Shown in pieces: positions 23,601 through 51,631 of a stretch of 64,000 nucleotides of DNA. The notes under the pieces are model-generated. The model was not told the DNA's origin and made no database searches. It saw only the letters and a program-made list of their open reading frames with translations. The stretch lies in assembly GCF_964204645.1 (NCBI RefSeq), contig NC_134030.1, positions 21,660,210-21,724,209 on the forward strand, given 5' to 3'. The number at the start of each line of letters is the position of its first letter. The first letter of the stretch is position 1. Origin of the DNA: Tubulanus polymorphus (taxonomy: Eukaryota; Animalia; Nemertea). The position numbers and the translations under genes are program-made.

Positions 23601-26600
23601 TGGTATGCTGATGGAAAACCTAATGATTTAACGGAAATTGACAATATCCGCGATCAAGGGGTAAATACTCCGCTGAAAGATGGAATTATCAACAGGAATC
23701 AGATAGGTTATGAAGCTGTGAAGAAATCAACATTTATTCAATGTCGATTGAGGAAATACAATGAGATACAACTACAGAGACCACTTCAATTTCAAATACT
23801 ACATCAAACTGTGATGGATGTTACGTGTAAGTAAAAAAGACATGTTTATGCCCCAGGCTTGATTTTAACTGAGAGGGGATAGATTTACCCGCGTCGGAAT
23901 ATGCCGTCGCTGCCGCGAGTGACGTTGACAGCCTGGAGGACGCAATTGTTGACCGATTTTTTTCAAACTTGGTACACAACTGGGGCATCACTTTGGCCAG
24001 AACCATATCATAAAGTGGGTCGATGCGGTTCACATTATGGTCACCAGGGGCCGCCATGAGAAACGACGTTAACAGTCTAGAAGCCGCTGTTGTCGACCGA
24101 TTTTCTTAAAACTTCATACATGAGTAGGGCTTCACTTGGGGGAACCCTATTTGAGATTAAGTTGATGCGATTTAAATTATGGCCACCAGGGGAAAACAGC
24201 CCAGAGGCTGCAACTGTTGATCAATTTTTTGATACTTTCTAACGCATTTACCACAAACCCTGTAACTTCACGTGTGGCGGTGAATTTCGGGTCGCTTTGC
24301 CTCATTCTAGTTATGAGAGAATTTCCAGACAATATCATATTGACGTCTGGTATGAGTTAAGGATATTTATACAGGAATGTCCCTGTCATATTTTAGATTG
24401 CCCGACAAACGACTTATGTCGCATGAGACCTGAACAAGTTTCAGGAGTCACTCAAACGTGTCCCCTGATAATCAAACATTAATTAAACATTTATGGGAGG
24501 GTTTAAGTAAAACTTTGTACTGCCCTGGCTTTTGTACAGCCTGATATCAGCCAAACACCTGCCACCACGAATGATATATTTTTCCATATTTAATGGATGA
24601 ACATTTTCTCATAGTTAAACGGGTCCAGTAGAAATATGAAAAGATGATAAAATGATTAAGTAAATAATTAATGATATCTAAAAAGTACATTTATATCTTT
24701 TTCTTTCAGATTTTCCCGATAGAATTCAAAGACGAGGTACTTTCACCGGACAACCTGATATTAAAACTGAAGGAGAAAATGTAGACTATATTTGTAGAAC
24801 AGAAGGTGGGAGGCCCGATCCTACAGTGATATACCAACAGAAGAGAAGAGGTTCTGAACAATGGGAAGCAATTCCTCCTGATCCACAAACTAAAAGAGTA
24901 GCACTCAAAGGGCATTTAAAAGGTTTTGACACGACCTACAAGTTCAAAGCTAATTTCAAACAGCACAATGGAACGTCATTTCGATGTGCTGTAAAGGAGA
25001 ACCTTACGTTTCCAGAACCTCAGCAATTTAATCCAATCATTGTTCATTGTAAGTAACAGATTTATTTGTTGTATTTGAGAAATCTTCCTAAGAATAACAG
25101 CATGGGTGGATCTAGGATTTTTCAAAGGGGGGGGTCTGCGAGACGGGCGATCGAAAATAATTTTATAAAATTGTGAAAAATCCTCGGGAAAATGGTGGAA
25201 TTCGATGAAATCTTGCTGCTGAGTCATAGTGCTGCGGTTACGATGAAGTGATGATAATTCTAATGAGATACCCACACGATTCATGGGGAAATGTATTTAT
25301 CTAAAATGTGTCATTATAATTTACAATTTTGGTTGTATCTTAAACGTTTTCGCAATCGCAAAAATTCAGATTATTTTGATTGGTTAAATGACCGTTTATC
25401 GGACACAGACTATAAAGTTTAGCGGAATGGCTGTAACCGAACGAAAAAGAGGGTCTCATGACAAATATGGGTCGGATCTTCACTGATATAATGACATATA
25501 CACAGCGCTGGGGTGATAGCTGCGCTACTGTAAGATCTGATTCTGAGGCAGAGAAGTACCAATCTCATGGGGCCTACTGCAAATAATCTCAAACCATTTT
25601 CATCTTCGGTTTTCCATAGACAAGTTTTTGAAAATGGCTCATAGATTTGAGTGGAAAGGTCAAACTATCAGATAGTTTTTTTTTTTTTATCGTGGGTTTT
25701 TGTCGACCATTTTCATCTTCTTAATTCAACAAACAGTGCGAGTTATCAGAAACGCTTCATAATTTCGATGTGAAAAGATTTGCTGATCTCGCGCTGAGAC
25801 ATGCTTGCTCGTGGGGGCGGGGGTTTCACGGTTGCGAATTTGATTCCTCAACCGAGTCAATCATGACCTAGCGCGCCGATATCTGCCGAACTGCCGTGAA
25901 GATTAGAGCTATTTACATGAAAAGACCTTTTACAAATTTTTCGGGAGGCATTAGAGGGGGTACAGCTAGCCACCCTATTCACCCCCTAGATCCGCCCCTG
26001 ATAAATGTATAAAGTTTTCCCTGCTACGATACCCCAGGGGCCGGTTGCATAGTCATGGCTTAGACTTAATACCAGTCTAAGACCAACTTAGTTCTATAGC
26101 CAATCTAACTACTTAAGACCAGTCTTAAGATTTAAGACCACTTATGGACTTAAGTCACGACTGTGCAACTGGCCCCAGGCCTTTGTAGACCTATCCGCCC
26201 TTAGTATAGTCAGGAGCGTGGCAGGAATTTCACAATGTCAAGTTCCAATCCCTACCAAGGGAGGAACGTGGCAGAGTCTCACGATGTCATCAGGTTCGAA
26301 TCCCTGCTGAGAGAAGATGGGTCTACTATGACAGGGCTTAAGAACTGTGCTAGGTCAGATATTACTTTTACTAATGTTTTGTTTGTTTTTCAATCAGATT
26401 TTGCTGCACCAGTTTACAAGAAATCCAGTGAAAATGAAACAAATGCAGCGTATATTGTAACAGTCAATAGTAACCCATTGACTCAACAAGTTACATGTGA
26501 CCCTCCAGCTGTCGTTCAAAAACTATCAAACTCTCAGTGGAATATAACGATACCTCTCGTAAATAGTACCACAACTGACTATAGAGGGCAGTGTTTGGCT

Positions 26601-29600
26601 GATGGTAACAAAGAAAGGGTCATTGATGTCGCTGGTTATCATCACGCCGGTCCAACTGATGAACCAGGTAAGATTCCGCGTCAGAACTGGACTTGTTGAC
26701 CCCACTCAGCGCGGGACTTAGGCAAAACGTTTTGTGAAAAACGTGTTTTCTGTTTTGGCGAAACAAATGTTATTTCGTGTGCGGCTAGGTTAATTCTCAA
26801 TTTGAAGCTAAGCTCAGGTCCGTATCATGTTGTCGGAAACGGTCTGCGATGTTTTCATCGGGAATTCTGAAAATTTGATGCGTTTTAGGCGCATTTCCAG
26901 CGAATGTTAGTGAATAGAGTTCATATGAAAAAGTCGCTGAAACACAATGCGTAATCTAATGAATTTTCTTTGACAAAATTAGCGGAACTCGGGATCTTCG
27001 TGGGTTCGCACCCAACACACCCCCCTTGGGTACGGGCCTGATACTATTTCTAATTACAGGGAATATCATGCAGGTGTGAAGTGGCCTAGTTTACAAAGTA
27101 GACCTACAAATCAAAACACGCTCAGTAAAAATGAGACACCGCGTGTGGAAAGTTGTTTATCGATACTTTGGTTTTTTGGATTTTGTACGTAATGTGTCTT
27201 CGATGGTGATTTCTAGGTCATTTCTGCCAACTTTTCAATGATTGAAAAGTTGTATTTTTGAAGAAAAGTTTGATGTACTTTTTTGACATGATGAAGGTGA
27301 AGTTCCTTGTTCCTTTATATTGTTTTACCAATGTATGTGTTATTTTGAATCGCGCCAATATTTGAATTTATAAAGTACTTTGGTAAACAAGGGTCAAGGA
27401 GTATGAACAAGTTCTATTTTCTAAGACCTAATCAAAATGGCCGTAGCCAATCAGTGATGAGTATTACTACCACTGTTCTTACGACTAGATGACCGCGTCA
27501 TAATTCGACCTGAGCTTAGTTTAAGTCGTCTAAATCTAAAGCCATCATCTGGGTAGTCACATAACTGTGGGTCAATTTTTGTTTGCAATTTAATTCACGA
27601 AAATTGTAAAAAAGATTTCGATACGTCAACATAGTGGAGTCTTGTGATGTCATCAGATTTGAATCCCTGCACAGGAAGAACAGGATGACTTGACTCTCAG
27701 TATTAACTGAACTCAGCGTATTACATTCAAATAATACTTTAGCATTTTCTACTTTCTATTTCGAAACTGTTTGACCCGATCGAGGAACTGTTAGTTGTTC
27801 GCATTTCGAAAACAACTTATTTACTTTATTTAGACGCTATTTGAGCTTTGAAATTATGGAACAATAAATTTTTGTTTGACCTAGTTAATTATTCAATTCA
27901 ATTGCTGTTACTTTTATCAATAGTTACAATAGAATAATTTCTAGCTTTATATAATTCAATTGCTGATTTGTTTGAATTTCAGTTCCAGATGAAGGGATTG
28001 GGGGAATAGTGTTTGGTGTACTGATATTACTGATTCTGATAATACTGTTTATACTGTGTCTTTGTGGCTGCTGTAAGTTTGACCTAAAACCATCATTTAA
28101 TCTGAAAAACAATAACAGACAAACTTGAAATAAAATACTGTGTTATTTCTAATTGACAGTGCGGTGCAGAAAACCTGATGATCAACTGTGTAGATGTGGA
28201 AATTGTAAGTCCTGTAATAATTCATTATACATAATGCTTAAAATTGAAAAAAATAGTTTACAAGGCTGGAGGGAGTCAAGGGTCCCAAGGTGGTACACAG
28301 TTGATTCTCGATTCTCAGTCAAAATTTTAAATTTCGGGACCCTAGTTGCAGAGTCTTATTCAAAAAGTGGTCGTAAAGTATTAGACTGGTCTTAAATTGT
28401 TAGATTGGTTATAGAAACCAAAATGAGCTTAGACTGATCTTAAGCTGTTAGATTGGCTATAGAACCGAAATCAGCTTAGACTGGTCTTAAGCTGTTAGAT
28501 TGGTTATAGAAACCAAAATCAGCTTAGACTGATCTTAAGTGGTTAGATTGGTTATAGAACTAAAATGAGCTTAGACTGGTCTTAAGCTGTTAGATAGGCC
28601 ACAGAACTAAAACTGTCTTAAACTGGTCTTGAATCTAAGCCATCACTGTGCAAATGGCCCTATTACAAAACATTTAGTTCATTGTCGATTGAAATGATTG
28701 TACACTGACAAGACTGTTCCCGACAGTGGCAGATAATTGAGAGTTCATGAGATCTGAAATTATAGCCTCACCTCTAGATATGCTTGATATTGCATACATG
28801 GGTTCAAGATCAATATAATTTTGTGTGCTCGCATTTGAACGGAAAAATGATAATTCAAAAAATAATTAGTCACTCCAAACATAAAAATACTGTATTTTGT
28901 TTTCCAGTGCTGTGTATCTATAGAAAACCTGCTGATAAACTGTTTAGATGTATTTGTCGCACCGAGGACTCGTCGGACGATGAACTATGTGTTTGTTGTT
29001 GCTGTAAGTGTCATAGAAAAATACCATCGTAGAATCGTAGAAAGGATTATCGCAAATTAGAATAATTTGTTTGTTTGTTTTAAGTGACTTGCAAATTACC
29101 TGCTGCCGATGAACCTGATAGTAAGGATGCCTCCTCAGATGAACTGTGTCATTGTTGTTGCTGTGAGTTCTATATATAAACTGATAATGATTAATAGTCA
29201 GTAACTGTAGAATAAACTGTTGTATTATTTCTATTTGCAGTGGTGTTGAGAAGTGAGCCGTGTACATGTAATTGCTGTAAGTTGTATTAACATTGAAAAC
29301 ATTGATGATTGATCCTGCAAAATTAACTGTTATTGTCATTGGACATTCATACAATTGAATTCAAAGTCTAAGAGTGTTTGAGAGTCTTCGTTCACAGTTG
29401 GTATTGATGTTAATAATCTTCAGACCGAGTTCATCGTAGATGATTAAAATCAGTTTTGTTTAAACACGAGAAAGTTTCACAGTATCATCAGTTCAATTGT
29501 GGCCTCAAAATGAATCATAGCATTAGCTACGTTTATGGATAGCATTAATATTATCCTATTTCTCTGGTGGATCAGTTGGTTAGGTTTTGTTGTGTGTCAG

Positions 29601-32600
29601 GTGATTGTGCTTCATGTAAATAAACAGTATTTCTGTTTTCTAATTAACAGTACCGTGTTTGTGTCCGAAATCTAAAGATGTGATTGAATTGTTGCGTTGG
29701 ACAAGTGAAACCTGGTATGAAAAAGGTAAGATTCTCTCACATGATTTACTGCGCATATTCTCAGATATCGGTTTGATAATGTTTAGGTGTTGTTTTCTCT
29801 TTGTAGATCATGAGAATTGGGTGAAAACACGTGACCAACTGCAGCCGGGTATTTATAGAATTATTAACCCTTTATTTCTATAACATGTAGAATATCTCGC
29901 ATGAATACAGTTCATAGTTTTAGAAATCATCCACTAATCATCTGAATGATATACATGTACAACAGATATTGCTTCATTTGTATCACACAATCACAGTTGT
30001 AATTTATAACCTCGAGTTAATGCTTTTGCTAATCACTTCAGTAGTTCAAAGATTGTCATGATTGCAATCAAGATGGCTGACTGGTGGCTATTTTTGTTTG
30101 GCAAAATAAGCTATTTTTTCTAATTTTTGAAGATTTTTTTATCAATTTTTGTAAGGTTTATTTGCGGCCTAAAAATTGGCATAATTGTCCAGATGGCTGA
30201 CTGGTGGTCATTTTTGTTCGCTGAAAATGAGTTTTTGCACATTTCAAAGGTTTCTTGAGAAATATCAAAGATGTTTTGATATTTTGTATGAACACTGTAT
30301 CTAGCTGTTCACGTGTCTTGAGGGTTGATGTATGCGTGTATCAGCTCCATGGTAGCCATTTTTCTTCCCAAAAATAAATACTATTTGCACATTTATTAAG
30401 TTATCTATAGAGAAACTTTAAAGATGCTTTCATAAATTTTTCCCGATGTTTGGTTTATACATGTATCTACCCTAGACATATCAGCAGTTCTGAAATTTGA
30501 ATCATCGGAATCAAGATGGCCGACTGGCGGCTATTGTTTGGTAACATCAGCACTTTTTGCACAATTTACTGACTCATATGTGGAACCAGCATGTTATGTT
30601 TTATTGTTTGTTTTTGGTAGATGTTTAATGCAATTAACTCACAATTAACTCACAATTTCTATCTGTGAAGCACATTTGTAATAATGGCCTCCTAGATTAA
30701 CTCACTGGATACAATGGAAACTCGTTTACGCAATGAAATAAACCAAATAATTTGGACCAAGAAACTTTTAAATTTTTCCATGCATTTCAGGTGTCATCTC
30801 TTAGGGCTACAGTTATTTTGGCTCACGTGGCAACCTATCAATATATTATCATATATTATACATTATGTAATTGTTCTTTATTGATGAAATTAACATTACA
30901 TTACTTAAACATTTATTCAAACCGTAAAAGATGACTGCCTCCGAAATCTCCCTATGACATCATCAAATTGCTTCTAGTGTTCGGTTCTATAGACCACTGC
31001 CAGATGGGAGAAAATGATCCAATCAATTTGATGATGTCATAGGGGGATTTAGGAAGAAGCTGAGTTGTAAAACGAGGTTCCGCTGTACACAGAAGGCTTT
31101 ATATACAAGATGGTCGTTTCTCAATATTTTTCTATCGTGGAAATCTTCTTCTGACCAGAAACTGGTCAATTACGTCATCACTTGGCGATCAATGATTCCA
31201 CTTGTGGCAAGTGAGGATCCACCAGGTGTCGCTAGTGTGCAGTAAGACCAATAAAGGATTCTGCTCACAGCAAGTGAGGATCCACCAGGTGTCGCTAGTG
31301 TGGAGTAGGACATCAACTACTGCTGCAAGAGAGGATTCCACTTGTGGCAAGTGAGGATCCACCAGGTGTCGCTAGTGTGGAGTAGGACATCAACTACTGC
31401 TACAATAGAAGATTCCACGTGAAAATGAACTATATGTGAGAAACACCCTTAATTAAAGAACGCTTTTAAATGTCGCTTTTTCATTTATATTCGTAGCTGG
31501 AGACTTTGAGGTCATTGAAACATTCAGTGCAGGTATAATCATTGTAATATCATTTGACTTGAAAAAAATATGAATTCAAAATGTTCGTTTGTAAAACAAC
31601 TGTTTGTTTGTGACGTCAGTGATTTCATTTGAAACTTAATTTACTATGAATTATCTATTTCTCTTTTATAGAAATTGTAAGAATTATTGTTGATGTTTAC
31701 GGAACTGAGAATGATTGGGTGATAACAAGAGATAAGGATAAACAAGGTAAGAGGAGTGAGAGGTAAGAGTAGTGAGTGGTAAGTGTAGTGAGTGAAAAGA
31801 GTAGTGAGAGGTAAGAGGAGTGAGTGGTAAGAGTAGTGAGAGGTAAGAGGGGTGAGTGGTAAGAGTAGTGAGAGGTAAGAGGATTGAGAGGTAAGAGGAG
31901 TGAGAGGTAAGAGGAGTGAGAGGTAAGAGTAGTGAGTGGTAAGTGTAGTGAGTGGTAAGAGTAGTGAGAGGTAAGAGTAGTGAGAGGTAAGAGGAGTGAG
32001 AGGTAAGAGGAGTGAGAGGTAAGAGTAGTGAGTGGTAAGAGAAGTGTGTGATAGGTGGAGAGTGTTGTGTCAGTAATCGTTGAGGTGATGTGGGTCTCTG
32101 ATGCCAGGGAGGAACAGAACTGGAACAGCTTTCGTTGGTTGGTTCCAATCATGGATACTGTCTGTCTCTAAATATGACACTTCTGCCTCCTATCTTCATC
32201 CAACAGTAATTCAAACTGTTTGATGCACAGTTTATTTGAATATTGAACAAATACTTTCTATATTTCATTTCAGCAATAGCTATCAGAGAATTCCTGTTTG
32301 GACAGTTATCACATGATCAAAGTAAGTTATTGTTTACCTATAGTTTGTTTTAACTTCATATACATGATTACATGCACATGTGTGTTTGTTATGTGAACAT
32401 GTACATGTGAGTTATCCATACATGTACATGTCAGTTATGGGAACATGTACATGTTACGTTTAAATGGACTTCTGAGTACTTCTGCATACATGTACATACA
32501 TGTTAGTAATACATACATGTATGTACATGTATGTGCACAAGTAGATGTGAGTGATGTTAACATGCACACGTGAATTCCTGTAACATGTTGAGTTCACTTG

Positions 32601-35600
32601 TGCAAATGAGTTCAGATTACATGGAGTTTGATCAATATATTTTCAGGTATGTTAGATTTGGTGAAAGAAATCCTAAGTAAGTTTACGAAACGACTCAATA
32701 TTTCCTCTTCAACTCGAATCTTGGATTCAAATGTGTTTATAATTATCTATTGACAGGAAAATACGCGAGAATAAACAATTTAAAAACGAAACTATCAAAT
32801 GAGATCGGTAAGAGTTGATTGAATACAGTAATTGATGTAATGAGTTTATTGATTATTATTCTACTGTCAACTCATTTTGTAAATGTATTACAGATACATT
32901 ACTGAACAAGAAGAGGTCAATAGATGGCGCTGATGCAGTTTACAATAGAGATGAAGGTACCGCACTATTATTCACTGATATTCACTGTTCACAGCTAGAG
33001 AGTTTGTAATCTGTAAACCTGATAGAAGCGGCCGGTAGAGAGTTTTTAATCTGTAAACCTGATAGAAGCGGCCGGTAGAGAGTTTGTAATCTGTAAACCT
33101 GATAGAAGCGGCCGGTAGAGAGTTTGTAATCTGTAAACCTGATAGAAGCGGCCGGTAGAGAGTTTGTAATCTATAAACCTGATAGAAGCGGCCGGTAGAG
33201 AGTTTATAATCTGTAAACCTGATAGAAGCGGCCGGTAGAGAGTTTGTAATCTGTAAACCTGTTAGAAGCGACCGGTAGAGAGTTTATAATCTGTAAACCT
33301 GATAGAAGCGACCGGTAGAGAGTTTGTAATCTGTAAACCTGATAGAAGCGGCCGGTAGAGAGTTTGTACTCTGTAAACCTGATAGAAGCGGCCCCGGAAG
33401 AGAGTTTGTAATCTGTAAACCCGATAGAAGCGGCCGGTAGAGAGTTTGTAATCTGTAAACCTGATAGAAGCGGCCGGTAGAGAGTTTATAATCTGTAAAC
33501 CTGATAGAAGCGGCCGGTAGAGAGTTTATAATCTGTATACCTGATAGAAGCGGCCAGTAGAGAGTTTGTAATCTATAAACCTGATAGAAGCGGCCGGTAG
33601 AGAGTTTGTAATCTGTAAACCTGATAGAAGCGGCCGGTAGAGAGTTTGTAATCTGTAAACCTGATAGAAGCGGCCGGTAGAGAGTTTGTAATCTGTAAAC
33701 CTGATAGAAGCGGCCGGTAGAGAGTTTGTAATCTGTAAACCGGGTCAGGGTCAAACTTAAGTTATAGCAAAATAATGAGACATATATTGATTTCTTCAAG
33801 TGGTTAATGTTTTAACATGTTTCAGGTGAAATTCATGTTAGTTTTATTACGCAATTGAATGAAGAGAAAAGACCCCTGACAGACAAAGAGAAACAGTTCA
33901 ACAGAGATGGTGAGTAAAACTATGAATTCTATCTCCAGTTGAGTTCCAGTTTGATGTTTGCGCACAGCGAATTGCCAACAAGTTTTAAAAGTGCTTTATT
34001 CTGACACAAAGTATCAATTTTCACTGAAAATGCATTTTGAAATATGTCTTCCAATGATTCGCAAAATTAAGCGAGTGGTTAAAGAGCTACTACTTTATGT
34101 GAATCACTGAGCTTATACTGGAAGCTAAAAACATTTTATATATTGTAGTTTTTGTCAGTTTCAAATCCTCAGTAAACGGTTTTAATGTATTTGCATATTT
34201 TCAGTTGCTTCAGCAGTTGAAGCTATTGTTGATTTGTTTGCTAAAATGTCCGGTAGGTTCCATAAATCATTTCAGTAAAAATACTGTGGAGTTTGTTGTG
34301 GAATCATTGAATAATTGATTGTGTTTATTTTTACTGTAGATGCTGAATTATGTGAACGAGGAATATTCAACATAAAACGTAGGTTTTAATTCTCATTTTA
34401 TCCTCAAATGTTTATAAATACATGTGCTCTATAATCTACTTTACATGTACATGTGAGTTCTCTGTACATGTACATGTCAGTTCTCAATACACATACATGT
34501 TAGTTCTCTGTACATACGTATACAACTGAGTTACGTGTACATGCGACTTTTCTTACTTGTGAGTTCTGAGCGAAATATTTTCTTCAAATACTTTTTCGTT
34601 ATATTTCAGCTACTGTTGAAATTGCTGGTAAGTTGTAATATTCACTATGATGTTTAAACTGGAGTCTGTTCATTTATAACTGAAATATCACTGTATCTTT
34701 TTATAGAAATGTTTGTGAAAGATACACTTAATAAAGAAGTTAAACAACAGAATGGTGAGTGTTCAGTTAATCTAGGAATCTATCAAGGGAGGAGGGCTTA
34801 CGACTATAAACTGATTACAAATTAAAAATATTTTGTCTAATTACAGGAAAACTAGTCACACAAATAGAAAACCAGAAAGTAACTGATGAAACAAAGATAG
34901 GTTTGTTATACGATAAACTAATTATCATAATTTATCCATAATTTATTGAAATATTGTCAGTGAATCTTGTTTATTAAACTATCTCCCGGTACTGAAAACA
35001 TGTAGTTAGAAATTAACCCCGCGATAGTTATACCTTTATGGTTGGTATTACAGAAATGGGAGTGGCTGACCGGGACCGTTCTGTGAGCAAAGATATCTGT
35101 GGTAAGACTGAAAATGTTGTTCTTTCCTTATTTTTCACGCTTATTACAAATCATTTCCTTAATGAAAAATCCGAAGTACAATAAAACCAGCTAGACCCGG
35201 TGATGTAGAACAATTGGTAACTTTGTCGAAATTCATCCGCTTTGTGGGAAATTTAAGGTTTTATAAAACCCGATAACCCAGATGTATATGGATGAAATTC
35301 TAGTTTGAACTGATCTGATCAATATTCATGTTATTTTATTCTATTCATTTGTAGAATCAGTTTTATTGGCGTCAAGTTTGCAGAAATTAGAAGAGAACAA
35401 ACATTCTACAGAACTAGATAAAAGTAAGTTTAAACTTTCTTTGTCCCTAGAACTAAATTTACCGAGTATTTGATGACCATGAATTGAAGATGAAATTTAT
35501 CGATGTCATCGGATTATCAGAAGCATCTGTTATGATTCAGAGCCAAGTTTTAAGTGGTGTTAAACTAAGAATGTTGCTAGGTGACAGTTTGTATCGATAT

Positions 35601-38600
35601 GAATAATCTTCAGACTGAGTTCATCGTAGATGATTAAAATCAGTTGTGTTTAAACGCAAAGAAGTTACCCAGTATCGTCAGTACAAAATCAATCAGTTTT
35701 AAGAAACCGTGTTTGGATTGTCATGCATACATCACATTGGGTAGCTCTGAGAATATCCAAATCATATCATTAGAGGCTAGCTGAGGGTGATTTCTGTCCA
35801 AATGTTCCATTTTGGGAAATTATTTTTTCATTTATTTATTTCATTGTTCAACTATATTTTCAGGTATTTTTGAAATAAGCCGAGATGTTTTAGGTAAGAA
35901 CTAAATATTACTAACAAACTATAAATACCGAGGTCTAGGGTCGAGAGCAGACGCTTTAAAAGAAATTTCTAGCGGACAAACTCTCAATTTTCTGATAAAA
36001 AACTTGTTGGATTGAATTTTAATCAGATATTTGAAAAGAAGTTTAGATTAGAAGTATTGATTTTAGCAGTAGTTGATGCTGTGTTTGATCAAACCTAATC
36101 ATGAATTATTCTTTTTTTCAGAAATGAAATTGAAAATCGCAGTTTTCAAATCTATCAAAGGTAAGAGGTCTCTGTATGGAATATACATCAGAGTCAGCAG
36201 GGTTTGTTCTATCATTTTCCAAGATTCAACCTGAGCTCAATTTGTTTTCTGAGAACTCAATTTCAGTTCTGATGTCATTTTCCTGGTAATTTATCTTCAC
36301 GAATCACTTCTAGAATTGTACGCCGGACGAGCTGAAAGATTTCAGAAAGAACTCAAAGAGAAACTGAAACAAGAGGAAAATGAAGAGAGAAAAAATGAGG
36401 AGGAATTGAACAGAATAATTCACAGTTCAGTTTGTCAGGCGTTTAAATATATCACTGATATGAATGAAAGTAAATATCGATTTTATATATCAAATTATAA
36501 ATGTCACATATTATGTGTGAATGAATGCACATGTAACATGTTGGTTCTTTGATACATTTCAGAAACTCTGATGGATAATAAAGTTGTAGGATATGGAGGT
36601 TTGTAAATAGTTCAATCACAAACCAGTTTTTATCATGAATAATCAGTTTGATTTTCTCTATTTATATTTCAGTGAGTCCAGAAGAGATAAGTGAGTTCTG
36701 ATTGATATTTATAAGTATTCTCAGTAGACTGCGCGCTTGCCGCTGATTTCATGTTGTAATTCGTCATAGTTACCTGTTTATAAGTTGTTTGTTTCTATAT
36801 TGATAGATTCTAAACTACATGAATTAGCCGATAAAGAGTTTAAAGATAAGAAAGGTACTGTACACATTACAAAGTGTGAAATTCAACATGTTTTATTTTT
36901 AAATCTTATTGATGTTTAATATCAATGTTTATTACAGTCGGTAGATTTAATCAAATAAAGACACCTGAAGAAATAGTGACTCTAACACTGAATATACCGG
37001 CACAACTCCGCACTGGTAAGTGACTATACACTGAAACTGTGCAGAATGTAAATATTTCACTGAGTTGAGAATCAGGCAACTCAGTTTGTCACAAACTTCC
37101 GAATGTGTATTTATACAATTTTTACAGTGTTGGATTCAGCTGAAAGATATCGCGTTATTCTGTGGGATAAAGCAGGTATTGTATATAGTATAGGAATTGC
37201 TAGTGTTTTATGAGTATATTTTATACCTGGTCTTTTTAACAATACCTGTAATTGGAAATCTATCCCTGAAATCCGGAAACAGTCCCCCTCAACAGATGAT
37301 GAAATCTTCCTTTACTGCAAGGAAGAATCTTTGAAATCGCTTGGAATACCAGTCCCTGCAAAACAGTCCTCTAGCCCCTGATTTTGAGGAATGCGCCATG
37401 AAAGTAACGATCTATCAGTGGATTATGAGGTTTATCTATCTTCAGAAAAAAACTTAATATCTGAAAGCAACAGTTTAAAAAGTTCCTAGTTTATAATGAA
37501 ACCAAGCTCAATGAATGTTGTGTCTATGTTTGCTGTTTTATATATGAATTTCAGTGGAATATTTCAAGGACGAATTCATTATTGCAATACAATCTGATGA
37601 ATCATTGAAAACTGCTACTCAAACTGCTTTAGATAACAGTAAGTTACATCTACAGTAAACTACATTTACATCTACAGCAAACTACATTTACATCTACAGT
37701 AAACTACATTTACATCTACAGTAAACTACATTTACATCTACAGTAAACTACATTTACATCTACAATAAACTACATTTACATCTACAGTAAACTACATTTA
37801 CATCTACAGTGAACTTTATTTACATCTACAGCAAACTAAATTTACATCTACAGCAAACTAAATTTACATCTACAGTAAACTACATTTACATCTACAGTAA
37901 ACCTAAATTTTACATCTACTGTATTACATCTACAGTAAACTACAATTACATCTACAGTAAACTACATTTACATCTACAGTAAACTACATTTACATAAACA
38001 GTAAACTACATTTACATCTACAGTAAACTACATTTACATCTGGTTTATTCCCATCTCGGGGAAAGGGCGAAATCGGAAGGGGCAAAATGGATAGACACCC
38101 TTACATCTACAGTAAATTTGTTATACATCTACAGTAAAATGCAATTACATCTACAGTAAACAATAAGTTTCAATTATCCTGTTAAGATTTTCATTGAAAC
38201 TTGTTTTTGTTTTTTTCAGATTCAAGAAACTTGAATGATTTATTGAAAAAAGAATTTTTGATAGGTAAAATTGTCTGTCTATTGAAATAATTGTTTTTTT
38301 TTACGAATAAATAATGAATCAATATCACTGCTATAAATTCATATAAGGCCAAAAAATGATCTTGTTTTTCCTAAATGCCGGGTTATTTTTTAAATTCCAA
38401 TATAATCTGTAAGCTGTTCATTTCTAAATCTGTTCATTTCTGGGTCTGTTATTAGCTTGATCATGTGTCTAAAAAAAGTTTTGAACAGCGGCTAAAGGGC
38501 TACCAAGCCCAATGAAATGCTTGTAATAATACTACTACATGGGAGATAGGCGGCCGGCAGGGTCAACTTTTAAGCCCAGCAGAAATGAGAAACAAGGTAT

Positions 38601-41600
38601 CAATTTTTTAGCCTTAACAGCTGATTTTACTGTGTAAAACAATTAAATGATTTTCTTCTATTTTTAGTTAATAGAATTTATCGTGATGTCAAATTCAAAA
38701 TACAATCAATTCCTACAGGTTTGTAGTTTTAGTAATTCACTATCAATTCTTGCATCTAAAATGTTTAATACATTTTCACATGTTGAAGTTTTGTCATATA
38801 TCACATCATGTCATTTCATATGACAACATCATCTGATATATATATGCTTTTAAAACATTTCAAAAATCATTTGTTTATTCATTCTTCATGACTGATTCGA
38901 TGCTGAATTCATATTCAATGTCTATTTGTGATTTCAGAGGAATTAAAGGAACGAGGAATCGTAGCTTATAGAAGTGAGTTAAATTCAAATATTTGTTCAT
39001 CAATTACACATTTTCAAGCTTCCCAATACCCCTAAACTACCTCTAAACTCCTATTAATAGACTCCTAACACTAACTTCCTAACACTAAACTCTTAACACT
39101 AAACCTCTAACACTAGACTCCTAACACTAGACTCCTGACACTAAACTCCTAACACTAGACTCCTGACACTAGACTCCTAACACTAGACTCCTGACACTAG
39201 ACTCCTAACACTAGACTCTTGACGCTAGACTCCTAACACTAAACTCCTAACGCTAGACTCCTAACGCTAGACTCCTGACGCTAGACTCCTGACGCTAGAC
39301 TCCTGACGCTAGACTCCTGACGCTAGACTCCTGACGCTAGACTCCTGACGCTAGACTCCTGACGCTAGACTCCTGACGCTAGACTCCTAACGCTAGACTC
39401 CTAACGCTAAACTCCTAACGCTAGACTCCTAACGCTAGACTCCTGACGCTAGACTCCTAACGCTAAACTCCTAACGCTAGACTACTTACGCTAGACTCCT
39501 GACGCTAGACTCCTAACGCTAAACTCCTAACGCTAGACTACTTACGCTAGACTCCTGACGCTAGACTCCTGACGCTAGACTCCTGACGCTAGACTCCTGA
39601 CGCTAGACTCCTGACGCTAGACTCCTGACGCTAGACTCCTGACGCTAGACTCCTGACGCTAGACTCCTGACGCTAGACTCCTAACGCTAGACTCCTAACG
39701 CTAGACTCCTAACGCTAAACTCCTAACGCTAGACTACTTACGCTAGACCCCTGACGCTAGACCCCTGACGCTAGACCCCTGACGCTAGACCCCTGACGCT
39801 AGACCCCTGACGCTAGACCCGTGACGCTAGACCCCTAGCAATAGACCCCTAGCAATAGACTCCTGACACTGGACTCCTGACACTGGACTCCTGACACTGG
39901 ACTCCTGACACTGGACTCCTGACACTGGACTCCTGACACTGGACTCCTGACACTGGACTCCTGACACTGGACTCCTGACACTAGACTCCTGACACTAAAC
40001 TCCTAACACTAGACTCCTATAACTAGACTCCTAGCAATAGACTCCTAAGACTAGACTCCTAACACTAAACTCCTAACACTAGAATCCTAACACTAGACTC
40101 CTAACACTAGACCCCTAACACTAGACTCCTAACACTATACTCTTAACACTAGACTCCTAACACTAAACTCCTAACACTAGAATCCTAACACTAGACTCCT
40201 AACACTATACTCTTAACACTAGACTCCTAACACTATACTCTTAACACTAGACTCCTAACACTAGACTCCTAACACTAAACTCCTAACCCTTAAACTCCTA
40301 ACCCTTAAACTCCTAACACTAGACTCCTAACACTAAACTCCTAACCCCTCAACTCCTCAGCTGAGTCTCAATGAAATGAGCAAATATTACAATCTTAAGA
40401 ATAAGTTATATAGATATAATGCATTGAATAATGATACAATAAATCGAATACTGTAATTATATTAGATTAATGTATTCTACAAATAAATAAGAATTTTCCA
40501 GATTTAGATTTTAATCAGAAGTAAGAATTATATGGTTAAAGTGAACTGTATAAGTTTACCAGTTCAGATCTACCGGTACTCAATGTTTATATATCCGGTA
40601 TTTGAATTATTGTTGTTTTTTGTTTTTCAGTAAAAGACGAAACAGCGCGTAAGTACTGATAACAACTGATTCGTTAAACTCTACATAAATAAATAACACA
40701 ATATGATATATCCTATATTGAATAGAAGCGGTTCTTATATAGCTCTGAATTCTGTGAAGCTGTTCATGAAATACTTCCTTTAGGATTGGAAAGAATAACA
40801 TGTTTCTCTCTCCCTGCAGTAATCTATTGTGTTTATTCTGTTTCAGTGAAACACATCAAACCAATTATTGCTGACAGAATCCAATATTTTGAAGGTGAAT
40901 ACATTGTATTGACTGTTAAGGGTATTAATTAACAAGTTAAACCAGTACAGAGTAAGGGTGAAGGTCGACTGTATTTTGTAGGAGGATATTTGGCGCTATT
41001 GCAGCATAAATAGTTTAAAACATCAGTCAATGTTGTAATAGTTTCTATTTTCTAAGTTGTTTTGCTCCTCATTAGGTACATTGTAACATGTATAATTACA
41101 GATTCGCTAGAGACTGTTTTAGAAGAGAAATGTAAAAAGGCTCTCAGTATGTGGTCATCAAAACACTGGAAATATGATATATCTACTGCGAGTAAGTTCA
41201 CAGAGAAATCAATTTGTGATTTATAATATTGTATAAAAACTTGTCTATTGTTTATTACATATAGTGTCTGAACTCAGTGAATTTACCAGTAGAACTTTAA
41301 AGACAAACACAGGTTATTGGAAACAAGTCAAAGAATGTTTTGGTAAATAATGAATTCTTGTTCACTGAACGTTTTATTAAATGATCTGATTTTTAGGTTT
41401 TGAATAATAATTATTTGTTCTGTTTGAATAGGAGATGAAATTAACGGTGAAACAAATACAACTGAACTGACAGAAATAGGTGAATATAAAAAAATTCAGA
41501 TAAACAGAAATATAGTATTGAATTCATTGAAGATGAAATTCATCAATGTAATCGAATCTTCACAGAGACCTGTTTTGATTCAAAGCAATATAAACTAATT

Positions 41601-43379
41601 TTAAACTAAGAGCGCTTGAAACCCTTTGGTCTCAGTTTGAATCAATGTGAAAATTTATTGTTTATAGTTACTGAATGTTTGGGTGAATGCAGTAAAACAA
41701 TGCGTGATAAATGGAACACTGGTGAGTACCCCTCATGAGTACTTCTCATGAGTACCCCTCATGAGTACCTATCATCAGTACCTCTCTTGAGTACCTTATT
41801 CAAATGACCACCGAGCGTCTTGAGTACTGTTAAGTACAGGACTTGAATACAAATTGTAATTCGAGCAGGAAAGTTGATTGAGTACCATTTATTAACTGTC
41901 AGGATATGTAATTAGTGTGGTGAGTACAATGAGTACCAAATACAGACACTCAACTGAGTACCCGGCCCCGGTACCTGAATTGTGTAAAGACATTTAAATG
42001 ATGTAATTCATTGATCAAGTTGAAACAAACTGCAAACTGAACCAGTTTATTTGTGAACTAATGTTTCATGATTTGATATTTTTAGACTATTTTAAAAACC
42101 GAAAGATGATTGTAGAGACAGGTAAATATTGCGTAGCTCTGATATTCAGCCCAGTACTGCCCCCTGGTGACTTTATGAGATGTAACTATTCTGTTATTTG
42201 TATTTTAGACGAGATTGTTGATGAGATAAAACGCGAATATTTTCAGACTCCCGAATTTAGAAGTAGGTTTCCAGTAAAATCAGAACCTGTTTCAACAACC
42301 AGAACTCAAATATTAATATCTGTATGTATTGTATTATTATTTATAGGATCAGTTGAGACTGCAGTGAATGAAGCTATCAAGAATTCAGGTAATTAAATAT
42401 TCTTCATAAATATGAATTCTGTGTTTGAATATTTCCAATTAGTCGAATTTAGATTTTGAATTGACTTCAGAGAAGAGCTTGGCCAAAGGTGTATTTTCAC
42501 GATGTAAACATGTATTTACTGCAGGTCAAATTCAGATTTTGAAATGACTTCAGATGTTTAGTGAATGTGTATTTTTTTCAATGTAAACTTATATTTTACA
42601 GAAAAATCACAAGCCGGCAAAAAACCGAACTATGAAGTTGCAGGTTTGTAACATTTCTGGTAACGAATTTGACCTGATGGATTTCACAGATTAGAAAACA
42701 AATTCCCTGGGAAAAAACAAATTCCATTTTAAATATGTCAACTATTTCGTTCCATGGTTTCCTGTCGTTACTAGGGTGGTAGTCACCCTTGTTGATGATT
42801 TACCCCTAAGGGTAACTTTGAATCGCGGTCTATGAAATCAGGAAGATTATGTAATATTCTGTTCAAAATTATATCTTATTATTTCAGAGAAATGGATAGC
42901 TGATGAAATGAAAGGTAAATTGACTGATGATAAATACTCAGTTTTATGATGAGTTTGTGTTGATGTTTACAGAATCATTTCTAATTTCAGGTTTCACGGT
43001 TAAACCATCTGAAATTTATGGTATGTGATATTGTTTTATATCTATATATGTTGTATGGGTGGCTCATCAGTCAGACAACTGGGCGAGAAATCGAGTAACA
43101 ATTCACTAAAAATCCTGATGTTTTTTTTTTCAGAGCGTAATGAATTTGCTAAACTTGCACAACCAAAAGGTAATGAATAGATTATGTGTGTTAAAACTGA
43201 TGTTATCGATTTTGATAATGTTTTATAATGTTAAACGTAATTTAATTTCTATTTCAGTAACGAGAAAATCAAGAGAGTTGATAAATGAGATACGTGCTAT
43301 AACAGATAAAGGTAATCAATATTGACTTCTATAAACATTTTACTGACTCAATATTTCCATATTCATGGATTCATGTTTC

Positions 43380-43410
<31 letters not shown>

Positions 43411-46400
43411 CGTGTCTTATGGTCCCCAAACCGGGAAATCAGGAATTGCAAAATAATATTTCATCATGGCTCAAAATATTTGCGTTGTAAGTTGATAGAT
43501 TTTCCTCTCATTCTGGAAGTATTTTGAAAATTTATTTTGCGCTTCAACTTTCTTCACCAATCTTTCTTGAAAATCACCTACATCAGCCAATCACCGGTAA
43601 AATGTTGACGTCACTGTAGTGTATGATGTAATCTGCTAAATCTGGAAAATGAAATCAACACCCATGAAATACTCGGGTTTATTGACTTCATGTAATTGTG
43701 AGAACTATCCATAAATTCTGTTTTGAGTTCGATCACAAACTTGTTTGGTCTTTACTTCTTTAGATTTGAAGTTTATCTGATGTTATATGTGAATGATACA
43801 ACTGTTTATAGTTTGTATGCATCAGTTCATATATTGTTTTCATTTCATTTTTCAGGCGAATTAAAAAAGCTCGGTTTCCTGGTAGAGGAGTCGAGTAAGT
43901 AAATTATACAGTCATCACTTTCTGATTTAGACTAGGATCGAGAGATGAAATAGTTTGACATACAATAAATCGACAAAATTAAGATGAAATTAAGTTTCAT
44001 TTTCTCTGGTTTGTGGGAGATCCGAAGTATATGATTAAACCGGTTTAATCCGGATCACTGGGGGAACCGGTGAAATTCATCTGGTTTATGAGAAATCACG
44101 ATTTAAAATCGTATTCTGTGAGATACAAGTTGATCGTTTAATAAATAGTCATAAAACTGAACGAAATCTTTAAGAAACCAAGAAATCGGATTTAACTGAT
44201 ATTGATTCAATGAGTTTGATTTGTATTTAGTGTTCTAATTTCCACTGAACAGTTTAACACATCATCAACAACTATTTCATTTATTTAGGGAAACCAACAA
44301 TATCCAATTCAAGACATTAGGCTAAAAAAAATTGATACCTTGTTTCTCCGCTCTGCTGAGCCTAAATGTTGACCCGGCCGGCCGCCTATCTACCCTATAC
44401 ATTACTTTTTTAAAAATCGTGATCAATTTTACCATAACAGACCCGGCCGCTATAGAAATGAACTGTTTATAAATTTTATCATATTTTACAAAAATGACCC
44501 GGCCGCTGCGGAGAAACAAGGTATCATTTTTGTTTAGCCTTATTCTTACGTTTCGTGTAGAATCCTTCCACACATCTTCAGAGTTTATTTGAAAAATATA
44601 TTTATAATTTACTGATATTCATCAAGACTGGAAATAGTCTTAACGGTTTACAACAATGATCAACAGTGTTTGATAATGCAATTCAACTAAGAGTCTAGAA
44701 TGTTTCCTTGAGCTAGTGTAGTTTATCCAACGTTTCGACTTGATCCTAAGTCATCTTCAGGAATACTGTATTCCTTGAGCTAGTGTAGTTTATTCAACGT
44801 TTTGACTATATCCTAATAGTCATCTTCAGGAATACTGTATTCCTTGAGCTAGTGTAGTTTATTCAACGTTTCGACTTTATCCTAATAGTCATCTTCAGGA
44901 ATTCAGGAATACTGTATTCCTTGAGCTAGTGTAGTTTATTCAACGTTTCAACTATATCCTAATAGTCATCTTCAGGAATACTGTATTCCTTGAGCTAGTG
45001 TAGTTTATTCGACGTTTCGACTATATCCTAATAGTCATCTTCAGGAATACTGTATTCCTTGAGCTAGTGTAGTTTATTCAACGTTTCGACTATACCCCAA
45101 TAGTCATCTTCAGGAATACTGTATTCCTTGAGCTAGTGTAGTTTATTCAACGTTTCGACTATACCCCAATAGTCATCTTCAGGAATACTGTATTCCTCGA
45201 GCTAGTGTAGTTTATCCAACGTTTCGACTTGATCCTAAGTCATCTTCAGGAATACTGTATTCCTTGAGCTAGTGTAGTTTATTCAACGTTTTGACTATAT
45301 CCTAATAGTCATCTTCAGGAATACTGTATTCCTTGAGCTAGTGTAGTTTATTCAACGTTTCCACTATATCCTAATAGTCATCTTCAGGAATACTGTATTC
45401 CTCGAGCTAGTGTAGTTTATTCAACGTTTCGACTTTATCCTAATAGTCATCTTCAGGAATACTGTATTCCTTGAGCTAGTGTAGTTTATTCAACGTTTCA
45501 ACTATATCCTAATAGTCATCTTCAGGAATACTGTATTCCTTGAGCTAGGGTAGTTTATTCAACGTTTCGACTATATCCTAATAGTCATCTTCAGGAATAC
45601 TGTATTCCTTGAGCTAGTGTAGTTTATTCAACGTTTCGACTTTATCCTAATAGTCATCTTCAGGAATACTGTATTCCTTGAGCTAGTGTAGTTTATTCAA
45701 CGTTTCAACTATATCCTAATAGTCATCTTCAGGAATACTGTATTCCTTGAGCTAGTGTAGTTTATTCAACGTTTCGACTATATCCTAATAGTCATCTTCA
45801 GGAATACTGTATTCCTTGAGCTAGTGTAGTTTATTCGACGTTTCGACTATACCCCAATAGTCATCTTCAGGAATACTTAAGTGTTTGTGAAATTCCAAGT
45901 ATAAACATTATCTAGAACTAAGAGCCTTATCAATTAATAAGACGTGATAGAAACTAGGGGTAATAATTAATGATGTAAGAACAGTTACAAATTTGAAGCA
46001 GAACAAACTCAAAGGGTTCTAATATGATATAGTAGTGAATATAAGTTTATGAAGTCGAATGACTTTAGGATGTTTGCAGTTGTTCGGTGTTTGGTTTATA
46101 TTGTGTATTTATTTATAGGGCTTAGTAGAAATCTAAGTAATGAAACTGCTGGTGAAGGTAGATCGGGTACTGGCCGACCAGTGAGTGGTGTGTCGAGCAG
46201 TGGCCGACCAGTGAGTGGTGATGGTGGATCACTTGGTGGTGATGGTGGATCACTTGGTGGTGATGGTGGACCAGTTGGTGGTGAAGGAACAGTGAACGAT
46301 GAACCTGCTGGTGGTGTTAGTCCGACTAGTGACACTGTGTTCACTGGTGGTGGTGGGTCGCCTTATGGTGGTCAGGGTGATGGTAGTATACCTCCTAACT

Positions 46401-46459: not shown

Positions 46460-47151
46460 CCGTCGATCTAGTGGTGACCGGAGGAGTGGTTATGGTAGAT
46501 CTACCTACCGCTGATATTGTGTTGTCAATGTTTAACCTCACCTGCTGTTTGACCTGTTTGCGTATTGCGTATTGTTTTAGAATTGATTGCTTTGCGTCAC
46601 CCGGTAGAAAATACGCTTCAATCTTGCATGTTTCAATATTTCAAAAACCGGAACTATGTTATACAGAACTTAAACCTCATGTTAATTTCGACCTATTTAT
46701 ATCGAATCTCAGTTCATTTGAAGATTGATAATTTTTCAGGAATTCTTTTTTATTCACAATCTCATAAACTCGTTTTGTAGTTTCTAAATATCGCTATTCG
46801 TGTTTTTTCCTCTCGTGGCCAAATTCACCCAGAATGTCATAGCTTTTAAAAGAGAAAATGTCTGGGGCGCGCCCCCGGGCCCATGGCCTTCGACATCTGA
46901 AACAGTTCAACTGCAGAGACTCAATTGCCCCCCCCCCTCTTTGGGTCTAACTCACGACTGTGGAACTGGGTCTAATTCATGACTGTGGAACTGGGTCTAA
47001 CTCACGACTGTGGAACTGGGTCCTGTATCACTGTTTGATGCTGCTTACAGGTATTAACTTTTTGCGCTTTTTCAAGTACGATTTTATACGAAAAGAAAAG
47101 AGAAAAAGAAAAATATGTTTAATCCCGTAAAAGAAAAAAAATGTAGTTTTC

Positions 47152-50634: not shown

Positions 50635-50888
50635 CATCCTACCATGACGGGGATTCGAACCTGACATGTACCCGTGGTATACGCGTAGCTTACGTGGTGT
50701 AAGTGACAGCCAATCGGAAATCCCGCTTTTGTTAGCCTATTTTTAATTCTTACTTTACCGATTACACAACTAGCAATTTGACATGTGCCGGTGCGGTAAA
50801 CCTTTGCACCCGGCTAGTGAGGCAGGGGTTCGCGCTGAGGCTGGGTATAACGATGTAATCAGGCTCGATTCCTTGCCGTGGTAGGATG
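50635..50888. mobile_element. Diverged member of the CAT..ATG MITE family
   Basis: CATCCTACCATGACGGGGATTCGAACCTGA ... TCAGGCTCGATTCCTTGCCGTGGTAGGATG. Confidence 0.65.
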
Positions 50889-51240
50889 GAAGTAATAGGG
50901 ATAATGGGCATTCAAGCCAAAGGTCGAACGGTCGAGCTCGTAAAAAATGAAAAAACATTAAAATAATAACAATTTCTACTTGAATTACTCGCGAAACTCA
51001 TAAAAATGAAAAATAAATTCTCACACGCTCGAATTTATTTTTCATTTTTTACTCGCTAAAAAGTAACGAGTAATTAACGAGTTGTTTGAATTGATATTTT
51101 AAACATATTTCAATATTTATATTTGTATGAGTTAGATTTTTAAACATTAAAGTGTGAGTAAAGTGTGAGTGAAATAATTCATATTTAAAACATTGAATAT
51201 TTATATTTGAATGAGTTTTAATAAAAGTTTTGTTATAAAA

Positions 51241-51559
51241 ATGAAGAAAGAAGAAGAACCATAATTACATAATTAATATTCTTAAAACTCCTTTCAATAA
51301 TGATGATATAATACTTTCAAAAGATTACAATGATTTGATTAACTTAAGAATTGAAAAAAGACAATTATATTATTTCAATTTTGATAATAAACAAATTATC
51401 TATAATGAAAATTCATCAAATATTGGAATTCAATGTGAATTAGATAATAATAATTCTTATAAAGATATTGGAATTCAATGTAATTTTGATGATGAAATTG
51501 TTGCGCCTAAATATAATCCTAATGAAAGCGTTTTATGTAATTGTGGAAAATATTACTAG
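51241..51559 (+). pseudogene. Frameshifted small ORF inside the Polinton-like element
   Basis: ATG AAG AAA GAA GAA GAA CCA is followed by an extra T at 51262. Removing it gives MKKEEEPNYIINILKTPF..NIGIQCELDNNNSYKDIGIQCNF..VLCNCGKYY*. Confidence 0.5.
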
Positions 51560-51631
51560 ATAAAGTAACTTATTGTTTTTTTATTTAAATCTTTTTAATT
51601 TCTATTCGCGTTATTGGTTAACAAGAATTGA

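Follow-up and report, generated by a model that had tools for sequence, protein, structure and literature searches.

Several described systems share features with the locus analysed here. Sea cucumber receptors with immunoglobulin (Ig) domains, transmembrane (TM) segment and NACHT domain bind microbes (PMC8699970), and AjNLRC4 among them has two TM segments and no LRR (PMC8699970, PMC13133943). Besides microbe binding, phagocytosis characterises membrane NLRs of the AjNLRC4 type. In crustaceans, a single Dscam gene encodes 10 Ig and 6 FN3 domains and has mutually exclusive exon clusters for the ectodomain, and its tail is rich in motifs and divided among about 13 exons (PMC6851185). In Penaeus monodon Dscam, 7 tail exons can be skipped, and the tail isoforms number at least 384 (PMC6851185). 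Products of the Schistosoma micro-exon genes (MEGs) are secreted and no longer than 189 aa; the genes have 10–20 exons, mostly of 15 nt, separated by long introns (10.1101/2023.06.21.545858). The sponge aggregation factor genes are clustered and have 154 of 155 introns in phase 1, which was interpreted as a signature of exon shuffling (PMC5400394). ITAM/ITIM motifs occur in the tails of the Hydractinia Alr family, for which the accessible part of the source mentions no NACHT-LRR (PMC9546547). Alr receptors are further characterised by homophilic binding that is allele-specific.

The window, i.e. the whole 64,000-nt stretch that was analysed, contains Tubulanus polymorphus LOC141906732 (RefSeq protein XP_074652139.1), a gene for a 1405-aa type I membrane protein with an Ig ectodomain and a single TM segment. 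With a probability of roughly 55%, it is a NACHT-less member of a young, Tubulanus-specific family of recognition receptors, the intracellular part of which was diversified mainly in the germline. To our knowledge, nemertean immunity is little described.

Gene model and tail exon chain

Our own model comprised 54 exons, all on the forward strand, and ran from the ATG at 20666 over 1405 aa to one final stop; as it is open over this length, all 53 of 53 introns are in phase 1. Exon 1 (20666–20771), the signal-peptide/leader exon, ends in phase 1 and matches the N-terminus of XP_074652139.1. The ectodomain is encoded by four exons, one per extracellular domain: Ig-like domain 1 (22324–22614, 291 nt; Pfam ig, E 0.0015, below cut-off), Ig-like domain 2 (23494–23826, 333 nt; Pfam Ig_2/C2-set_2, weak, E 0.05), Ig domain 3 (24710–25048, 339 nt; CD80-like C2-set, PF08205 above cut-off) and the membrane-proximal domain 4 (26398–26667, 270 nt). 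The latter is conserved in paralogs, contains two Cys, gave no match in the Pfam scan and is Ig-like by eye only. Pfam returned no FN3 match in the ectodomain exons, and alternative exon clusters were not found there. The TM exon (27983–28072, 90 nt) encodes the sole internal hydrophobic segment according to hydropathy, and the Gly/Ser-rich terminal exon with the stop codon is located at 46119–46459. NACHT was detected neither within the 64-kb window nor in the P0050 tail. The paralog that follows on the same strand, LOC141907671 (P0049/P0057), is represented by its 5′ part at 56985–64000.

Between the TM exon and the terminal exon, splice-site scans yielded 47 exons with a total of 2448 nt (816 aa), reproducing the chain of symmetric phase-1 exons proposed in the initial annotation. 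All 47 are 18–156 nt long, have a length divisible by 3, are bounded by AG/GT and are free of stops in the phase-1 frame, so that any subset could indeed be skipped in frame as had been claimed; stops occur in the other two frames in 36 and 42 of them. The term "micro-exon" is generous given these sizes (median 48 nt; 31 exons of ≤51 nt, only 4 of ≤27 nt). Introns measure 73–1657 nt, many of them 73–95 nt, and splice sites are mostly strong.

The exons had initially been picked partly by frame, and three lines of evidence uphold the chain nevertheless: a frame-blind scan, the RefSeq model and the keeping of frame in paralogs. In the frame-blind scan for splice consensus, 24 of 30 candidates were divisible by 3 (binomial p 2e-7 vs. 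1/3), 22 of these 24 being open in phase 1, and three control scans returned 0/16 open symmetric candidates. XP_074652139.1 equals our model minus exon 7 (31497–31532), an exon present in most paralog RefSeq models; it contains 46 of the 47 tail exons. The reading as a single gene for a type I Ig receptor is supported. Another candidate exon, near 40500, was discarded because it had no symmetric open reading. Among paralogs, the frame is kept in 145/147 exon copies, and indels in the flanking introns are a multiple of 3 in only 23/155 cases. It is hardly credible that the family is a largely functionless, recently amplified gene set: the high dN/dS and some broken or split copies (C6, 17.59 and 18.08 Mb) would suit this, but almost every copy retains its frame and splice sites, and at least 13 long open RefSeq models exist in the family, most with isoforms.

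Tail parts and searches for relatives

The tail begins with a Cys-rich juxtamembrane part encoded by exons 1–6 (28160–29848; exons at 28160–28204, 28908–29003, 29085–29162, 29241–29276, 29651–29725 and 29807–29848), with 23 Cys within residues 470–570. Exons 1–4 vary among paralogs; exons 1, 3 and 4 also occur in NACHT-LRR paralogs. Proposed module A is encoded by exons 7–14 (31497–34252; 31497–31532, 31672–31746, 32274–32321, 32647–32676, 32757–32807, 32894–32956, 33826–33909 and 34205–34252), and proposed module B by exons 15–23 (34340–36469; 34340–34378, 34610–34627, 34707–34754, 34847–34900, 35054–35101, 35355–35423, 35864–35893, 36122–36160 and 36314–36469). Proposed modules C (exons 24–31, 36563–38718; 36563–36598, 36673–36690, 36807–36854, 36938–37015, 37128–37175, 37555–37638, 38220–38264 and 38668–38718) and D (exons 32–38, 38938–41721; 38938–38973, 40631–40648, 40847–40894, 41102–41191, 41265–41342, 41432–41479 and 41668–41721) are duplicated together in many paralogs. 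Exons 39–47 (42086–43894; 42086–42121, 42209–42262, 42347–42388, 42602–42643, 42888–42914, 42991–43020, 43134–43169, 43258–43311 and 43856–43894) encode proposed module E and the last small exon.

Long-range junctions in paralogs (39>25, 15>40, 23>32, 38>47, 33>40 and 47>32) fall at or beside the proposed borders, which were set partly after one junction had been seen. Exons 31–34 resemble exons 14–17 in sequence and in size (51-36-18-48 vs. 48-39-18-48 nt), with a z of 3.3–4.1 for exons 16/33 among 820 junction pairs. Modules B and D were aligned by hhalign at a probability of 8–14% and E 0.002–0.004, other module pairs scoring near shuffle level. Module homology is convincing for B vs. D only, and a five-module repeat is supported only in part. 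A SAM-like motif noticed by eye at exons 15/32/47 was dropped, as it had neither Pfam nor fold support.

The tail is helical, charged, long and rod-like, and partly repetitive. AlphaFold modelled module E as a helical bundle of about 110 aa that folds alone (pLDDT mostly 80–95 at model residues 261–360), which makes it a candidate new interaction domain; most of the tail was modelled poorly, and the N-terminal half gave no fold (pLDDT 39). Searches for relatives were run with single exons or RefSeq proteins as queries. No homologue of the tail was found outside Tubulanus polymorphus among proteins of about 200–2000 aa, in a search that needs shared 5-mers and would let longer or distant kin escape. 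In Pfam scans of tail parts and paralogs, the tail matched no family, and neither PDB sequence searches nor fold searches with Foldseek, VIA and Atlas produced a significant match, in agreement with the initial annotation, which had recognised no known domain in the tail. The motif search detected no ITAM/ITIM-like and no P-loop motif in the tail, and no intronless donor gene was present among the scored candidates in the species' own genome. In two Atlas feature searches with different tail parts, clusters of Sey1_3HB (0.85, 0.92), GBP_C (0.79–0.81) and GVIN1 (0.76–0.77) appeared both times. These hits would fit a tail descended from the stalks of dynamin-like GTPases (three-helix bundles of Sey1/atlastin, GBP C-terminus, GVIN1) and acting on membranes or oligomerising likewise; such descent is very unlikely. 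Pfam, PDB-sequence and fold searches gave no match, most of the tail being poorly modelled.

Paralogs, tail types and splicing

LOC141906732 heads a tandem array. Ig exon 3 has 24 genome copies at ≥73% identity, and the largest tail exon (exon 23) has 18; all top Ig3 matches looked up belong to Tubulanus polymorphus. Full paralog structures were taken from RefSeq proteins and match coordinates. The downstream paralog LOC141907671 (P0049) contains the same exon series plus a duplicated block, and paralogs in general duplicate or delete exon blocks in frame.

The same ectodomain occurs with tails of four types: the exon array alone, NACHT-LRR alone, the array with NACHT-LRR behind it, and a short tail. 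NACHT lies in the same chain in paralogs P0001, P0002 and P0055, the last joining tail exons 15–23, 32–37 and 47 to NACHT-LRR. At the hybrid loci (C6 22.26 Mb, C9 0.31 Mb and C19), of which two are derived from coordinates only and the third is split by RefSeq, the TM exon and exons 14–18, 23 and 33–35 lie ahead of the NACHT exon on one strand; at two of these loci, exon 47 also comes before the NACHT exon. Clades by tail type were rejected with an Ig3 tree (AU p 0.002–0.012). This tree is built on one 336-nt exon, is poorly resolved and open to gene conversion, and contains some genes twice, with two Ig3 copies each.

Divergence between paralogs amounts to 11.5% in tail exons vs. 10.8% in nearby intron flanks, with a dN/dS of about 0.7 in the tail exons. 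Together with the kept frame and the fusion of the array to NACHT-LRR in hybrids, these values would be expected of a fast-evolving bait, i.e. a decoy or sensor for intracellular pathogen effectors that is guarded by or fused to NACHT-LRR like the integrated domains of plant NLRs. We regard a bait as improbable: the genome and databases yielded no host protein to mimic, relaxed constraint in young duplicates would likewise give a dN/dS below 1, and the N-terminal tail half is 87–92% identical among complete paralogs. Improbable, too, is a family of adhesion or structural receptors without immune function (in epidermis, proboscis, gland or gamete), in which the helical tail and a C-terminal PDZ-type motif anchor the receptor to the cortex and the NLR fusions are a side branch. 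The long charged helical rod would serve this purpose, many paralogs end in a T-x-V motif, and the nearest ectodomain matches outside the family, probably multi-Ig proteins, are long and match over many stretches; LOC141906732, however, lacks the C-terminal T-x-V motif in its terminal exon, and immune loci typically show such fast tandem expansion, exchange of tails and recurrent coupling to NACHT-LRR.

RefSeq lists one isoform for LOC141906732 and 1–4 for each of 13 family genes, every isoform being one event from the longest, although such counts underestimate rare splicing. In the isoforms of the 13 genes, a whole tail exon is skipped in eight cases and the TM segment is removed in three. 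The skips recur at few exons (1, 7, 25, 30, 32 and 38–39), mostly near proposed module borders. The only three sequencing runs that contain this region read through introns without any GT-AG joint and are therefore DNA. Support for the combinatorially spliced signalling tail of the initial annotation is weak, with single-step skips in paralogs against the one isoform here. MEG-like splicing, by which cells or tissues would skip subsets of the 47 exons and draw a large signalling-tail repertoire from one gene, is permitted by the exon symmetry, agrees with the skips and TM-removing events and has a precedent in the shrimp Dscam tail (PMC6851185). It is nonetheless unlikely, as paralogs have at most four isoforms with single events at few, mostly border exons, splice sites are mostly strong, and skipping inside module E would break its predicted compact fold. 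Variation seems to reside mainly between germline copies rather than to arise from heavy splicing of one gene.

Proposed mechanism and comparison with known systems

The best reading is a family of lineage-specific, immune-type receptors with shuffled intracellular modules. Unequal crossing-over or gene conversion between neighbouring copies would rearrange exon blocks and, since every intron is in phase 1, would nearly always give an open protein, which would explain the exon symmetry without massive exon skipping; the uniform phase thereby allows intracellular parts to be shuffled. About five helical modules in a row may make up the tail; as a rule it would be included whole, and exons close to module borders would now and then be skipped. 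The receptor would be clustered when its Ig domains bind ligand. Palmitoylation of the Cys-rich juxtamembrane stretch is probable, and the array of helices may act as a docking or oligomerisation scaffold. Because the same array precedes NACHT-LRR in hybrids, NACHT-less members are most likely sensor partners or tuning competitors of membrane NLRs, presumably in innate immune or self/non-self recognition. The immune role put forward initially is plausible, because sister genes carry NACHT-LRR; the spliced signalling tail attached to it is weakly supported. A broader version is unlikely: an undescribed invertebrate immune receptor system in which one Ig ectodomain is joined to an orphan, exon-encoded helical array, and this array is rearranged between genes, also spliced combinatorially in each cell, and connects NACHT-less sensors to membrane NLRs with the same modules. 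If true, it would bring a new domain for intracellular interactions and a novel means of diversifying signalling output.

One locus thus combines a receptor ectodomain with intracellular parts that can be exchanged. Among these parts are an NLR module and a region of 800–1200 aa without detectable relative. The family is also a test case for symmetric small exons serving splicing diversity vs. germline shuffling. No paper on this Tubulanus receptor family was found, and the initial annotation likewise recognised no receptor family with such a cytoplasmic design; skippable tail exons as such are known from Penaeus monodon Dscam.

Runs of short exons divisible by 3 partly resemble MEGs, and 42/47 tail exons lie inside the MEG range of 6–81 nt. 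MEG products are small, secreted and without TM segment, whereas LOC141906732 encodes a 1405-aa type I membrane protein with a cytoplasmic, probably folded tail from 47 exons (median 48 nt) and many introns of 73–95 nt. Crustacean Dscam likewise is an Ig receptor with a tail of small exons, some skippable; Tubulanus differs in its multigene array, four ectodomain exons and 47-exon helical tail. The Ig-TM genes of the Hydractinia Alr family likewise form clusters, are divergent and lineage-specific, use a separate exon for each domain and have diverse tails, some of them alternative (PMC9546547), but LOC141906732 is without ITAM/ITIM-like motif and without detected Alr homology. Phase 1 in 53/53 introns recalls the sponge aggregation factors, in which symmetric exons encode extracellular Calx-beta/VWA/Wreath domains, none of them matched by Pfam in exons, tail parts or paralogs here; in Tubulanus, they encode an intracellular orphan helical region. 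Like AjNLRC4, LOC141906732 has extracellular Ig domains and a TM segment, but unlike it no NACHT. AjNLRC4 has two TM segments and no LRR, whereas the Tubulanus NLR paralogs have one TM segment and a C-terminal LRR-like region. A small-exon helical array is not among the features described for AjNLRC4/AjNLR-new. Ig ectodomain, membrane anchor and NACHT are joined in one chain in AjNLRC4/AjNLR-new as in P0001, P0002 and the hybrids.

Exon chain, ectodomain and membrane region

The exon chain of the window gene, all of it on the plus strand, was rebuilt by splice-site scans of the window and then fixed by coordinates. It opens with the leader exon (20666-20771); four exons encode the ectodomain between this and the TM exon (27983-28072), and 47 tail exons (28160-43894) and a terminal exon (46119-46459) follow. 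The tail exons sum to 2448 nt (816 aa); all 47 have lengths divisible by 3, AG/GT ends and an open phase-1 frame, with stops in 36 and 42 of them in the remaining two frames. The complete model comprises 1405 aa, with phase 1 in 53 of 53 introns. In a frame-blind scan, 24 of 30 candidate exons were divisible by 3 (p = 2e-7), and control scans gave 0 of 16 open symmetric candidates. Because the rebuilt chain and the frame-blind scan show the same bias, the initial annotation was right in exon count, symmetry, phase and lack of stops; its term "micro-exon" is generous, the tail exons (median 48 nt, only four of ≤27 nt) being small, not strictly micro.

The RefSeq protein XP_074652139.1 (LOC141906732, P0050) equals the rebuilt model minus the 36-nt exon 7, and the presence of 46 such exons in an annotation pipeline model suggests RNA support behind it. 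Three sequencing runs covering the region behaved like DNA. Searching with Ig exon 3 returned full-length proteins, all those looked up being 'uncharacterized' RefSeq entries of Tubulanus polymorphus.

Pfam assigned a C2-set Ig domain to exon 3 and weak Ig signals to exons 1-2. Compared with the next paralog (61091-61423), Ig2 (23494-23826) had a dN/dS of ~0.93, Ig1 of 0.41 and Ig3 of 0.52; judged from these sequences, Ig2 is a candidate ligand-binding domain. One internal TM segment is followed by 23 Cys within 100 residues. A DHHC palmitoyltransferase exon (PF01529, E 3e-13; 6767-6859, plus strand) lies about 14 kb upstream of the Cys-rich receptor cluster, which may be coincidence. An 82-bp tandem repeat (9.5 copies; 21602-22380, plus strand), also present at 59093-59310 and at another locus (L008), has as its unit the Ig1 splice acceptor and exon start; every unit holds a 42-nt in-frame AG...GT stretch and a 40-nt spacer, and copy number varies among paralogs. 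Elsewhere, the window contains a perfect (TGA)130 microsatellite (9582-9971) and a GIY-YIG endonuclease fragment (E 6e-4; 18029-18508, minus strand), probably from a Penelope-like retroelement.

Proposed modules of the tail

The tail is Glu- and Lys-rich and helical by prediction. As initially noted, it has no known domain: Pfam, PDB sequence and fold searches gave no significant match, and homology searches found no homologues beyond Tubulanus polymorphus. Of the structural check proposed at the outset, only part succeeded: AlphaFold gave a helical bundle for exons 40-47, the final 110 residues (pLDDT mostly 80-95), but did not model the first half with confidence (pLDDT 39). Atlas features twice pointed to dynamin-like stalks (Sey1, GBP, GVIN1), a lead only; no ITAM/ITIM-like or P-loop motif was found in the tail, and its action as a GTPase stalk is improbable.

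Exons 14-17 match exons 31-34 in size, and no junction pairs scored higher than these (z up to 4.1; low-probability hhalign matches with E 0.002-0.004). Short motif exons resembling one another occur at positions 7, 15, 24, 32, 39 and 47, and six long-range paralog junctions fall at or beside them. From these features the tail is interpreted as a series of some five modules, each 107-167 aa long; the support is good for B (exons 15-23) and D (32-38), tentative for the rest.

Two direct copies of a 16-nt sequence, 55 nt from each other, surround the stop codon (46406-46476, plus strand). Beyond it, another frame briefly resembles the P0072 paralog's C-terminus, and a small insertion is the probable origin of the C-terminal end as it now stands. 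The last intron holds 17 copies of a 69-bp unit (44704-45877, minus strand) with hammerhead-like CUGAnGA...GAAA motifs and a three-stem fold of z only -0.6 to -1.4 on the minus strand, and without an Rfam match. Further downstream, long inverted repeats flank an AT-rich core (about 50885-52176), a transposon-like element with a 116-aa ORF (51632-51982, minus strand) lacking a clear Pfam match.

Germline variation and splicing across the family

In the 268-Mb genome, Ig exon 3 has 24 close copies, of which 12 form a tandem run beginning in the window (spacing mostly 33-40 kb). The largest tail exon is present in 18 copies, and NACHT-LRR frames of one subfamily, each intact and within a single exon, number about 18. 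When window exons were mapped onto RefSeq paralogs, the same ectodomain was found with four architectures: (a) the array alone, in which exons 25-39 or 32-47 are doubled and single exons missing, differing by copy, and many C-termini are T-x-V; (b) TM, exons 1, 3 and 4, then NACHT-LRR (P0001, P0002); (c) array then NACHT-LRR; and (d) short tails (P0004, P0008). For type (c), P0055 joins exons 15-23, 32-37 and 47 to NACHT, its TM half being a separate RefSeq model (P0077) on the same contig. By coordinates only, TM, tail exons and NACHT follow in order on one strand at C6 22.26 Mb and C9 0.31 Mb of the genome; at C6 22.263 Mb, the exon 47 region has 73 nt identical to the window's, with a NACHT exon about 1.9 kb further on. 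The window gene is of type (a), and no NACHT remnant was found in it. That such arrays act as effector decoys is unlikely.

In a tree of the 24 Ig3 exons, AU tests rejected single clades of array-only, NACHT-bearing, array-bearing and NLR-only copies (p 0.002-0.012). Ectodomains and tails have therefore been repeatedly recombined or converted, one short exon giving limited resolution and no direction. The receptors of a related family (P0013, P0019; C6 about 20.4-22 Mb, C9 about 4.2-5.1 Mb) have a single Ig (about 45-55% to Ig3) and tails in which YxxM-type tyrosine motifs are repeated; single-Ig genes also sit within the tandem array. Two near-identical tail copies (G000 C6 17.59 and 18.08 Mb; L040, L043), split in RefSeq, have lost an acceptor, exon 32 being 38 nt; a NACHT-LRR exon lies near both on the opposite strand.

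Germline variation between copies is large. Frame was kept in 145 of 147 paralog copies of exons 27-47, length-changed copies included, compared with lengths divisible by 3 in 23 of 155 intron indels; that the array is junk is very improbable. Paralogs diverged by 11.5% in exons versus 10.8% in aligned intron flanks, with dN/dS about 0.7 for tail exons and about 0.48 for Ig3 pairs.

Among 13 long array-type RefSeq genes, each encoded 1-4 distinct proteins, each one event off the longest. Eight whole-exon tail skips occurred (exons 1, 7, 25, 30 twice, 32 twice, 38+39); in isoforms of three genes (P0062, P0067, P0070) the TM helix was wholly or mostly removed, by which ectodomain plus tail would be secreted, and the other events changed an end of the protein or moved a splice site slightly. 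The annotation thus shows genuine but modest skipping, and it undercounts such events. The combinatorial tail splicing first proposed is weakly supported by these single skips; as the main explanation it is unlikely, if the strongest of the alternatives.

Proposed mechanism and known systems

Architecture, copy number, tail types, in-frame changes of exon blocks and a limited amount of skipping in the annotation are established. Beyond these, a joint mechanism is favored at a probability of about 0.55. Uniform phase 1 would make recombination between neighbors frame-safe; the array would be a mostly constitutive helical scaffold, organized at the membrane by ligand-driven clustering and probable palmitoylation; and array-only receptors may partner or compete with NLR-type paralogs bearing the same modules. 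A non-immune adhesion role for these Ig receptors is unlikely, marginally more so than the decoy.

The structure is real and unusual, present in RefSeq models yet uncharacterised, and the tail is an orphan; a literature search found no paper on this Tubulanus receptor family. Sea cucumber has receptors of the Ig-TM-NACHT type (PMC8699970, PMC13133943). Shrimp Dscam has tail exons that can be skipped (PMC6851185), the genes of sponge aggregation factors lie in clusters with all introns in phase 1 (PMC5400394), and schistosome MEGs contain symmetric micro-exons (10.1101/2023.06.21.545858). In Hydractinia, Ig receptor genes are clustered and their tails vary (PMC9546547). Because a defining test was negative for each, the window gene belongs to none of the five; by analogy, its way of working would be closest to that of a family of invertebrate immune receptors that is clustered and shuffled.
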